Sequence record: MK514281.1 | Direction: 5' to 3' (one strand) | Length of the DNA stretch: 64,000 bases | Shown: in pieces, positions 13,870 to 16,164 of the stretch | Position numbering within the stretch: the first letter of the stretch is position 1 | Layout of the letters: the number at the start of each line of letters is the position of its first letter | Position numbers and translations under genes: made by a program | The notes under the pieces: model-generated | What the model was told of the DNA's origin: nothing | The model's database searches: none | The model's input: the letters and a program-made list of their open reading frames with translations, nothing else

Positions 13870-14586
13870 ATGTATGGTTTATTAATCCTCGCCTTGCCTC
13901 TGTCACCGTACGTCCACATGAGTGCGATGACTGAGGAACAATTCCAGAAACGCCTCCCGCAATTCATCAAAGACCTGGAAGCCGACATCTTCCCCAACGT
14001 CTGTTTCCAGGGTGCCTTTAACGTCAGCAACACCCGCACGGTCACTCAGCTGTTCATTCCGTGTAACGGCTTGGTGTCAGCACGGGAACTGGCGTATGAA
14101 CAGATCCGTAATATTCTTGCTAACCCAGAGAAAGAAGTCCAGCACGTCACCAACATCGGTGATTGGTTAGGTCGTCCGGGTAAGGTGATGTTTGATAATG
14201 CGGATGGGTCTGTGGATGAGGTCGTTGTGACCGACATGTACAAATATCTGGTACACGAGAGAAGAGAGCGTTCTGTCTTTCGGTTCAGTCCGGTTGATCT
14301 CAGTATCACCGATACCGAACCATTACCAACTCACCTCTACCCGCGTGATCATTTCTACGACCAGGTCTACATCGACAAAGACGGTGAGCGTGCTTTCCTG
14401 TCTTACGGGTCGTGCGGTGAGGAAGGCTGTGCCATAGAGCCGGGCGAAGAGAAGCCCGTGCAAGTGTACGGCGTTACCTACTCGTCACTGGATGAAGCGG
14501 CCCGATGCTATAACCTGCCTGAGCAGTACGTGAAAGAACGCGTTGAATCTGACAGCCTTGAATGGCTGGAGTGGTCATATTTGTAA
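13870..14586 (+). CDS. Hypothetical protein with C-terminal NUMOD1/IENR1-like DNA-binding module; paralogue of 18132-18914
   Basis: VYGVTYSSLDEAARCYNLPEQYVKERVES...W; shared TNIGDWL motif. Confidence 0.6.
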   Translation: MYGLLILALPLSPYVHMSAMTEEQFQKRLPQFIKDLEADIFPNVCFQGAFNVSNTRTVTQLFIPCNGLVSARELAYEQIRNILANPEKEVQHVTNIGDWLGRPGKVMFDNADGSVDEVVVTDMYKYLVHERRERSVFRFSPVDLSITDTEPLPTHLYPRDHFYDQVYIDKDGERAFLSYGSCGEEGCAIEPGEEKPVQVYGVTYSSLDEAARCYNLPEQYVKERVESDSLEWLEWSYL

Positions 14587-14714: not shown

Positions 14715-14912
14715 ATGACCACAAACCCGCAGTTTATTTTCGTGGCTCAGAATTCTGATGCTACACACAGCGTAGAGAAACTGGAAGTAGGACGCGATAC
14801 CGATACCCAGAAGAACCTCACGGAACTTCGTAAAGGTTTGCCGTTCGACTTCTCGTTTATCATGTCTGAAGAGGCGATCTATCAACTTCGACAGGCAGGG
14901 CACATCAACTAA
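14715..14912 (+). CDS. Small hypothetical protein
   Basis: 65 aa, fills the gap in the operon. Confidence 0.5.
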   Translation: MTTNPQFIFVAQNSDATHSVEKLEVGRDTDTQKNLTELRKGLPFDFSFIMSEEAIYQLRQAGHIN

Positions 14913-14927
14913 ACTGCTGAGGTAGTC

Positions 14928-15380
14928 ATGACGAACAAATCGGAGATCTCACACGGTGGTGGTGATCAGCCTATGGAAAAAGAGCAAAGCAACTTATCCG
15001 TACTGGTGAACTACTCCACAGGTGTGATGGAAGGTGACCGTTTTAATTACTCGGTTGCATTGGCGCTGTTGAAAGACGGCATCAAAGTGAAACGCGAAGA
15101 CTGGAAGAACGCTTTCCTGGTATTCGTCCCGGGTAGTCAGAATGTTGAACTGCCAAAAGGGTCGCCGTATGAAGTCGCACTCCACGGTAAGAAGTCCGTT
15201 GCCAATATTCGTCCGCACATCGATCTGTACACGGAGTACGGTGAATTCGAAGTCGGTTGGACCGCCAACCAGGAAGACACCAACGCCGATGACTGGATGA
15301 TTGTCTTAGACAAGAACACCAATCAAGACGACAGTGCCGACGAAGAGAAAGAGTCTTCACAAGACGACTCGAAGTCATAA
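14928..15380 (+). CDS. DUF2829 / Tad2-like anti-Thoeris/anti-CBASS nucleotide-signal sponge
   Basis: FNYSVALALLKDGIKVKREDWKNAFLVF ... IDLYT...GWTANQEDTNADDWMIV follows the DUF2829 pattern (F.eAl..lk.G.kv.R.gW ... W.psq.D.la.DW.iv). Confidence 0.75.
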   Translation: MTNKSEISHGGGDQPMEKEQSNLSVLVNYSTGVMEGDRFNYSVALALLKDGIKVKREDWKNAFLVFVPGSQNVELPKGSPYEVALHGKKSVANIRPHIDLYTEYGEFEVGWTANQEDTNADDWMIVLDKNTNQDDSADEEKESSQDDSKS

Positions 15381-15385
15381 ACTCC

Positions 15386-15414
15386 AGGAGAGCTTCGGCT
15401 CTCCTTTTATGCCC
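15386..15414 (+). terminator. Hairpin + TTATGCC
   Basis: aggagagc-ttcg-gctctcct-tttatgccc. Confidence 0.7.
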
Positions 15415-15429
15415 ATTAAGGAACATGTC

Positions 15430-15789
15430 ATGAGTGAAAAGAAAGCGTTCGAAGTGGTATTGGATAGCCGTCATGAACCGTACGAGGCTTACCAGTTATT
15501 AGTGGCGCGTATCAATACGTTATTACGCACCGGTCAAGGCTACCATGAAGTGAAACTCACGAAGTGGCAGCTTTACGATAACGGTCTTCTTATCAAAGGA
15601 GATGATGATGTGCATATCTCCTTGTTGCGTCATTTCTATTACGACGAACAACGCAATACGTTTGGTGGTGGCTTCATGGCCTTTGAGATCCTGGAAGATT
15701 TGGGTCGGTACTACAAAGTGCCCGATATCACAGAAGGGATGGGCGAGAACGTTGGCCTCGTCTTCACGGTCACGGTAACCACACCATAA
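15430..15789 (+). CDS. Hypothetical protein, tandem paralogue 1 of 4 (V.xT.W family)
   Basis: ATG 15430 behind aagga; VKLTKWQLYDNG...HISLLRHFYYDE. Confidence 0.65.
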   Translation: MSEKKAFEVVLDSRHEPYEAYQLLVARINTLLRTGQGYHEVKLTKWQLYDNGLLIKGDDDVHISLLRHFYYDEQRNTFGGGFMAFEILEDLGRYYKVPDITEGMGENVGLVFTVTVTTP

Positions 15790-15795
15790 GAGGTT

Positions 15796-16164
15796 GTGAT
15801 GAAACCACTCTTCGCCATGAAGTTTGATACCCGGGATGCGGGATTAGGGGATCAACTCGATCTCTTGCAATCACGGGTGAAGGCTTACTCTAAACACGGC
15901 ACCATGATCAAAGATGTGGCGGTGACTGCCTGGGTGGTCTGTTCGGATAACATGCCAGTTGCCGGTGATGACCCTGCTCATGTCAGCATTATCCACCGTT
16001 ACCGTTACGACATCGAACAGCAGTGTGTGGTCGGTGGGGTCAGTGCCATGGATGCTCTGCGTGAGATCTGGTCGGCGTATGGTCCTGACTCTACCCTCCC
16101 ACCGTTCAGCCGGATACCCGGTGCTGTCGATATGCAATTTACCTTAACTGTGTTCACTATTTAA
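15796..16164 (+). CDS. Hypothetical protein, tandem paralogue 2 of 4
   Basis: VAVTAWVVCSD...HVSIIHRYRYDIEQQCVVGG; gaggt RBS. Confidence 0.65.
   Translation: MMKPLFAMKFDTRDAGLGDQLDLLQSRVKAYSKHGTMIKDVAVTAWVVCSDNMPVAGDDPAHVSIIHRYRYDIEQQCVVGGVSAMDALREIWSAYGPDSTLPPFSRIPGAVDMQFTLTVFTI

Follow-up and report, generated by a model that had tools for sequence, protein, structure and literature searches.

A Tad2-like protein with a predicted variant ligand pocket, gp275, in the Erwinia phage Rebecca

The DNA analysed here (the window, 64,000 nucleotides) is the final 64 kb of MK514281.1, Erwinia phage Rebecca, species Agricanvirus ray, with an identity of 100%. The gene under study is an intact, unbroken open reading frame on the plus strand, starting with ATG at position 14928 and ending at 15380 with the stop codon included, and it encodes a protein of 150 aa. 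It is annotated as gp275 (QBP07380.1), a hypothetical protein. A preliminary description of the window had noticed a Tad2-like ORF at these positions, and this observation was confirmed. The ribosome-binding site was found unchanged in ten related genomes, AH06 among them, and the gene was intact in 17 of the 17 related genomes found. The preliminary description had also assumed a nucleus-forming phage. This was correct, as RAY, which belongs to the same species as Rebecca, is a characterised nucleus-forming phage. The features of the locus are compiled in Table 1.

Table 1. Features at the gp275 locus; positions are those of the window, residues those of gp275.
Feature	Position	Strand	Basis
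Upstream neighbour gp274, 65 aa, PHROG 11788	14715..14912	+	annotation, synteny
GAGG ribosome-binding site, 5 nt 5' of ATG	14919..14922	+	read from sequence
Complete CDS, Tad2-like gp275	14928..15380	+	ORF list, annotation, PF11195, phrog_1048, pN/pS, LC-MS/MS
N-terminal extension, residues 1-38, mildly acidic, predicted disordered, conserved	14928..15041	+	pLDDT, lineage comparison
Tad2 (DUF2829) domain, residues 39-126	15042..15305	+	Pfam, pLDDT 94-98, Foldseek
Shortened beta1-beta2 loop W59-K60-N61-A62, without Asn-Gly	15102..15113	+	136-relative alignment
Beta2-to-beta5 connector, residues 68-89 ('inserted loop')	15129..15194	+	column occupancy, AF2 model
C-terminal pocket motif, residues 111-123	15258..15296	+	column shares, HgmTad2 mapping
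C-terminal tail, residues 127-150, acidic, disordered, hypervariable	15306..15377	+	composition, pLDDT, lineage comparison
Stem-loop, 8 pairs, UUCG loop, then U-rich run, 5 nt after stop	15386..15410	+	folding

The GC-rich hairpin that follows gp275 had a folding energy of -14.2 kcal/mol (z = -3.3 vs shuffles) and is kept in ten genomes; in AH06 it contains a G-U wobble. A simple terminator scan did not list it, and folding confirmed it; we predict that it is terminator-like or stabilises the transcript. Upstream, gp274 ends 15 nt before the Tad2-like gene, with the same order in Rebecca, AH06 and an assembled contig of 288 kb, and the two genes possibly form one transcription unit. The longer order of vRNAP beta' subunit, gp273, gp274 and Tad2-like gene is likewise kept in AH06 and in the 288-kb contig, so that the position of the gene is conserved in three phage lineages. 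In gp274 the last 24 residues were invariant across three diverged lineages and the first 40 were variable (pN 0.11-0.25). The synonymous divergence in the 3' part of gp274 was only slightly lower, which gave little ground for an overlapping DNA or RNA element.

Several observations were made on the other neighbours. The protein gp273 (13870-14586) showed a sub-threshold match of residues 191-232 to the Pfam I-TevI DNA-binding domain (E 0.0045, 17.3 bits vs 27) and was the fastest-diverging neighbour, with a pN of 0.56 vs AH06. Downstream, gp276 is annotated at 15334-15789 with a GTG start at 15334 that overlaps the Tad2-like gene by 47 nt. In nine related genomes gp276 starts at an ATG that corresponds to 15430 and is served by a separate AAGGAA ribosome-binding site, and the match to the PHROG 6658 profile sets in at residue 35 of gp276; the GTG start is probably over-extended. 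The genes gp276 (15430-15789) and gp277 (15799-16164) are tandem paralogues that both match PHROG 6658 (E 5e-59 and 6e-66), and neither gave a match in Pfam. They are followed in the same orientation by gp278 and gp279, which encode more small proteins.

The assignment of gp275 to a family was approached by sequence and by structure prediction. Residues 40-126 matched PF11195 (Tad2-like, formerly DUF2829) with an E-value of 4.5e-14 and 53.2 bits, above the curated threshold (gathering score 25). The match covered positions 2-73 of the 73 profile positions, which bears out the earlier remark that both halves of the DUF2829 signature are present. PHROG 1048 (phrog_1048) was matched at 2e-47. When gp275 was used as lone query against the PDB, SptTad2, ModTad2, SPO1 gp34.65 and HgmTad2/AcrIIA7 were matched with E-values from 1e-5 to 0.4. 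A word-indexed homologue search returned four close relatives, and a full HMMER scan of 1.84 billion representative proteins returned 324 relatives at E ≤ 0.001, with just one 50%-identity cluster close to gp275. A profile built from 141 relatives matched every solved Tad2 with E-values of 1e-22 to 1e-30. The residues A44, G51, R56, W59, W111, D117, D122 and W123, which are each at least 90% conserved among the 141 sequences, are all kept in gp275.

An AlphaFold2 (AF2) model calculated on the alignment of the relatives had a pLDDT above 90 for residues 31-130, mostly 94-98. Its secondary structure comprised a helix at residues 41-49, five or six strands, and helices at 80-84 and 115-119, and thus the predicted fold follows the Tad2 pattern of an N-terminal helix and an antiparallel sheet, with short helices both in the connector and close to the C-terminal end. 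In a Foldseek search against the PDB the best 24 matches were Tad2 chains exclusively (E 6e-5 or better, TM-score normalised to target 0.64-0.89), and the next match had an E-value of 0.16. For SPO1 Tad2, on which a superposition had been proposed as a check, the TM-score in this search was up to 0.80. Because the Pfam match, the profile of the relatives, the AF2 model and the Foldseek search agree, the family membership is secure, and we regard it as virtually certain that gp275 belongs to the Tad2 family. This assignment is not new. The Ea35-70 record already carries DUF2829 for the gene of gp275, and the identical protein of Simmy50 is named 'Thoeris anti-defense 2-like domain-containing protein' in UniProt. 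Our literature search found no published study of the gp275 protein and no report on Tad2 in Chimalliviridae.

The gene is expressed and under purifying selection. The gp273 protein of RAY differs from gp275 of Rebecca by a single residue of the C-terminal tail (Asn in RAY, Gln in Rebecca), and it was found by LC-MS/MS in a crude RAY lysate with 18.7% coverage (Sharma et al. 2019, PMC6690015, Table 3); since the sample was a crude lysate, this detection does not place the protein in the virion. The pN/pS of gp275 was 0.048 among ten E. amylovora Agricanvirus genomes and 0.18 vs the E. billingiae phage AH06, which, as judged from these comparisons, indicates purifying selection. The protein is 100% identical across 16 genomes. 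This identity could not by itself be taken as evidence of strong selection, as the synonymous diversity of gp274 and gp275 is very low, and it is partly a result of the very low DNA divergence of the two genes. Among the ten E. amylovora Agricanvirus genomes pS was 0 for gp274 and 0.026 for gp275, vs 0.08-0.35 for the neighbours. Since pS is near zero here compared to the flanking genes, the data suggest a recent shared history, a sweep or an exchange, of the two-gene stretch.

Both ends of gp275 extend beyond the domain, and the acidic N- and C-terminal extensions mentioned in the preliminary description were borne out. The N-terminal extension contains 6 D+E vs 3 K+R (pI 4.6). Its residues 1-30 had a pLDDT of 34-46, with values below 50 for residues 1-26. 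For comparing lineages we used Rebecca, the 288-kb contig (its copy of the Tad2-like protein is 86% identical), AH06 and a fourth metagenomic copy, which are 84-86% identical overall. Among these four lineages only 3 of the 38 positions in the N-terminal extension were variable (pN/pS 0.07-0.12). The C-terminal tail contains 9 D+E vs 3 K+R (pI 4.05), and its residues 131-147 had a pLDDT below 50 and are predicted to be disordered. In the tail 22 of 24 positions varied, yet it was acidic in every lineage compared; in three related lineages it is shorter. It was also observed that many of the nearest Tad2-domain relatives have 60-150 additional N-terminal residues with conserved columns in common, and therefore the bare form of 90 aa known from the solved structures is not the rule in the subfamily of gp275.

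A stretch of 22 residues had been quoted earlier as an inserted loop; it corresponds to residues 68-89, the connector between beta2 and beta5. Compared to the short Pfam model and to the shortest solved Tad2 it is indeed additional. Compared to the 136 nearest relatives it is not, as the connector columns are mostly filled (0-17 gaps of 136), and the interpretation as an insertion was rejected on this column occupancy. The relatives share P68 (103 of 136), G69 (114), P80 (88), Y81 (76) and A84 (83) with gp275, and the model places a strand at 70-74 and a helix at 80-84 of the connector, both with high confidence.

The largest deviation of gp275 lies in the pocket that binds gcADPR in other Tad2 proteins. 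The residues contacting gcADPR have been described for HgmTad2 (Li et al., preprint 10.1101/2023.11.15.567273), where N22 and G23 contact the diphosphate and the adenine, and where the W21A/N22A and S90A/T92A/D93A variants lost most binding (10.1101/2023.11.15.567273). We mapped these contacts on gp275 via HMMER alignments, in which the chain numbering equals the numbering of Li et al. plus one. W21, W87 and D93 correspond to W59, W111 and D117; M76, A78, T82 and V84 correspond to L100, T102, E106 and E108; L88, S90 and T92 correspond to T112, N114 and E116; and N22 and G23 are deleted. Hence the 12 contacts comprise three identical, one conservative, six substituted and two deleted positions. 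The pocket had been called divergent from its C-terminal motif, quoted as 13 residues that correspond to residues 111-123, and the mapping supports this divergence beyond the case made then. The largest deviation, the two-residue deletion after W59, had been overlooked.

The Asn-Gly after the loop Trp is absent from gp275, in which the Trp itself is kept, and it is common among the 136 relatives (Asn in 102, Gly in 102). The short beta1-beta2 loop is common to 16 of the 136 relatives. In the C-terminal motif W111, D117, D122 and W123 are kept, and N114, E116, T118 and N119 deviate. N114 replaces a Ser found in 109 of the 136 relatives, E116 replaces Thr, Ala or Ser (104 of 136), and T118 and N119 each occur in 1 of 136. 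As A62 (p = 0.0006), N114 (p = 0.0006) and E116 (p = 0.03, Fisher) were enriched in the 16 relatives with the short loop, the alignment suggests that the loop and these three residues form a coherent pocket subtype. The pocket strand additionally carries a His-x-Asp pair, H97 and D99, found in 125 and 124 of the 136 relatives, respectively. In the HMMER alignments this pair was present in none of the solved Tad2 proteins. As predicted from the sequence, the pocket of gp275 is unlike that of every Tad2 with a solved structure.

In the comparison of the four lineages 16 of the 88 domain positions were variable, seven of them within residues 112-121 and one being K60. The pN of residues 112-121 was 0.25-0.39 vs 0.03-0.04 in the remaining domain (8-10 times), with a pN/pS of 0.3-0.5 at synonymous sites near saturation. 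The clustering of the replacements was significant for segments that were defined after the data had been seen (Fisher p = 0.005), and it gave p = 0.38 with the ten contact-homologous positions alone. Residues 112-121 are a hot spot of replacements among these close lineages, judging from the aligned sequences. Positive selection on this segment was not supported by the pN/pS of 0.3-0.5 and the test on the contact positions. Adaptation is not proven because this pN/pS is below 1, and the hot spot could reflect relaxed constraint instead.

Published Tad2 proteins are tetrameric sponges. The ligands bound within the family are 3'cADPR, His-ADPR, N7-cADPR, cyclic dinucleotides or cUMP/cCMP, and all Tad2 proteins whose function is known act as signal sponges. 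A previous claim that the domain has anti-CRISPR activity was not reproduced (10.1101/2023.11.15.567273). The best structural match to gp275 was ModTad2/MoTad2 from a Myroides odoratus prophage (PDB 9EIB, 8V3E), with a TM-score normalised to target of 0.80-0.89 and an identity of 30-33%. This protein sequesters His-ADPR (type II Thoeris) and also cUMP. ModTad2 and gp275 have the same domain order (phmmer E 3e-5), but in contrast to gp275 ModTad2 has a Trp-Asn-Gly loop, a shorter connector and no terminal extensions. SptTad2 (PDB 8WJD), which binds gcADPR and cGG, was the best pairwise sequence match among the solved structures (E 1.1e-5, TM-score 0.70); its connector is longer than that of gp275, and it has the Asn-Gly loop and a C-terminal motif with Ser and Thr. 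HgmTad2 (AcrIIA7; PDB 8KBI-8KBM), a sponge for gcADPR and cGG/cGAMP, shares the fold (TM-score 0.64-0.68) and has W21, W87 and D93 in common with gp275 as W59, W111 and D117. Unlike gp275 it has N22 and G23, the dinucleotide contacts R31, L36, F70 and N85, and a longer connector. SPO1 Tad2 (gp34.65; PDB 8SME-8SMG, 8WJE), the founding type I Thoeris sponge, belongs to the same family and fold (profile E 1.7e-22), but the pairwise similarity is weak (phmmer E 0.36), and with its 89 aa it has no extensions, an Asn-Gly loop and a shorter connector.

Fifteen Tad2 homologues have been screened against seven systems (Hadary et al. 2025, Table S2). By our reading of the table, ten of them were active against one or more systems and five against none, with inhibition of type I as the commonest activity (7 of 15). 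Reading the homologues of Table S2 by eye, without alignment to gp275, we found four (nos. 79, 72, 69 and 80) that have no Asn-Gly after the loop Trp. Among these, no. 79 blocks type I and type IV Thoeris, and nos. 69 and 80 showed no inhibition in the seven systems (Hadary et al. 2025). No. 72 blocks type I by plaque assay only, if we interpret the column headers correctly in taking the 'n, N/A, y' rows as such validation. Nos. 79 and 72 thus resemble gp275 in the loop, but by eye they are far shorter or otherwise divergent in the C-terminal motif. No. 83, which has the His-x-Asp motif of the gp275 subfamily together with a canonical loop and motif, blocks type I (Hadary et al. 2025). Because nos. 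79 and 72 are active without the Asn-Gly, the short loop does not exclude activity, and since such homologues still block type I or type IV, the ligand of gp275 is not readable from the sequence.

Some Tad2 proteins have a second pocket for cyclic dinucleotides. In HgmTad2 cGG and cGAMP are contacted by R31, P32, D34, L36, K46, S47, F70, T71 and N85, and binding was abolished in the R31A/N85A and in the F70A variant (10.1101/2023.11.15.567273). R31, P32, D34 and L36 correspond to V67, P68, S70 and N72 of gp275 and N85 to V109; K46 and S47 could not be aligned, and F70 and T71 have no counterpart. The connector of gp275 comprises 26 residues vs approx. 44 in HgmTad2 and approx. 34 in SptTad2, and is thus approx. 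18 residues shorter than that of HgmTad2; the long, cavity-forming beta2-beta5 insertion domain of the dinucleotide-binding type is not found in gp275. As the key contacts are not kept and the connector is shorter, binding of dinucleotides (CBASS) as in HgmTad2 is unlikely from the sequence, and a pocket of this type was rejected by the residue mapping.

We consider it on balance probable, by analogy to the published proteins, that gp275 is an immune-signal sponge, best read as a tetramer that takes up an ADPR-derived signal. A homotetramer of gp275 would assemble in the host cytoplasm, and its pockets at the protomer interfaces would bind and sequester a nucleotide-derived alarm molecule of a bacterial signalling defence. 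The likeliest ligand would be the ADPR-derived product of a TIR (Thoeris-type) enzyme, and with this signal sequestered the defence effector would never be switched on. The kept core residues, the Tad2-only fold matches, the detection in lysate, the pN/pS of 0.05-0.18 and the synteny are in favour of this role, as are the precedent of phiKZ Tad1 and the anti-Thoeris genes often predicted in nucleus-forming phages. On the other side, just 3 of the 12 HgmTad2 contacts are identical and two are deleted, and the corresponding HgmTad2 mutants lose most binding; 5 of the 15 screened homologues were inactive, including two of the four without Asn-Gly; and our literature search found no report of Thoeris, CBASS or Pycsar in Erwinia amylovora. 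Taken together, the interpretation given in the preliminary description, an anti-defence sponge possibly with altered ligand specificity, was partly supported. In a narrower version of the sponge role gp275 would, as SPO1 Tad2 does, simply bind 3'cADPR and counter type I Thoeris, the differences in the pocket being immaterial; this version appeared rather unlikely to us. Type I inhibition is the commonest activity among the tested homologues, nos. 72 and 79 retain it without the Asn-Gly, and W59, W111 and D117 are kept; but the Asn-Gly that binds diphosphate and adenine in HgmTad2 is deleted, both the Ser and the Thr of the C-terminal motif have given way to other residues, T118 and N119 are both nearly unique among the relatives, and the best structural matches are to ModTad2, which binds His-ADPR and has no blocking effect on type I.

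It is unlikely that gp275 carries the Tad2 fold without a role in immune signalling and binds another metabolite or a protein partner, e.g. gp274, or acts via its N-terminal extension. Such a protein would fit with the third of the screened homologues that inhibited nothing, with a pocket helix that varies freely among close lineages in which the disordered N-terminal extension is tightly conserved, and with gp274, which is always adjacent and has an invariant C-terminus. However, the Tad2 proteins of known function are all signal sponges, the anti-CRISPR function claimed for the domain was not reproduced, and gp275 retains, under purifying selection, W59, W111 and D117 as the invariant residues of the pocket. 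Very unlikely, in our view, is the sequestration of cyclic mono- or dinucleotides (CBASS/Pycsar) in a dimer-internal second pocket built by the beta2-beta5 connector. The dimer-internal interface is where cGG or cGAMP is bound in HgmTad2 and SptTad2 and cUMP in MoTad2, and the connector of gp275 is longer than that of SPO1 Tad2 and confidently folded in the model; against this stand the replacement of R31, L36 and N85 by V67, N72 and V109, the missing counterpart of F70, the abolished binding of the R31A/N85A and F70A variants of HgmTad2, and a connector much shorter than that of HgmTad2. A chance ORF or a decaying gene has practically no probability left, as it is refuted by the detected peptides, the pN/pS of 0.05-0.18, the intact gene in all 17 related genomes and the high-confidence predicted fold, and nothing was found in its favour.

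Going beyond the preferred reading as a sponge, the Tad2-like proteins of Agricanvirus might have a pocket tuned to a signal outside the known set and diversifying, with the N-terminal extension and gp274 adding a function. We regard this combination as quite speculative and improbable. If it were true, the added function, e.g. trafficking or the binding of a partner in nucleus-forming infection, would be one not seen in minimal Tad2 proteins, and the diversification of the pocket between phage lineages would follow the way in which signalling differs between hosts.

The DNA of nucleus-forming jumbo phages is shielded from nucleases, but the phages are still exposed to small-molecule signalling defences, and a sponge would cover this weakness left by the phage nucleus. 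Surveys have predicted anti-Thoeris genes in many chimallin-encoding phages, and a 2026 review gives phiKZ Tad1 as the sole characterised anti-defence protein of jumbo phages. phiKZ Tad1 resembles gp275 in its setting, being a signal sponge of a nucleus-forming jumbo phage, but the two proteins are unrelated in family and fold, and the likeness does not go beyond function and setting. From a second sponge family, unrelated to the first, it would become apparent how jumbo phages cover the signalling gap. An entire genus of fire-blight phages has kept the Tad2-like gene, and its variant pocket with the rapid change between close lineages offers a natural series for Tad2 specificity. The value of the present analysis is incremental, because the family call was already public and no feature of the sequence compels us to assume an unusual function; gp275 is an uncharacterised family member with a variant pocket, of modest interest.

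Tad2-like folds were also observed in other phages. A 'putative thymidylate kinase' of the Erwinia phage RisingSun had a weak match to the Tad2 fold (E 4e-3), and because of this match its label may be wrong. In BFVD, Tad2-fold proteins were found in the large phages PaBG of Pseudomonas, pEt-SU of Edwardsiella, JA11 of Dickeya and Parlo of Serratia; they also occur in KVP40-like vibriophages.
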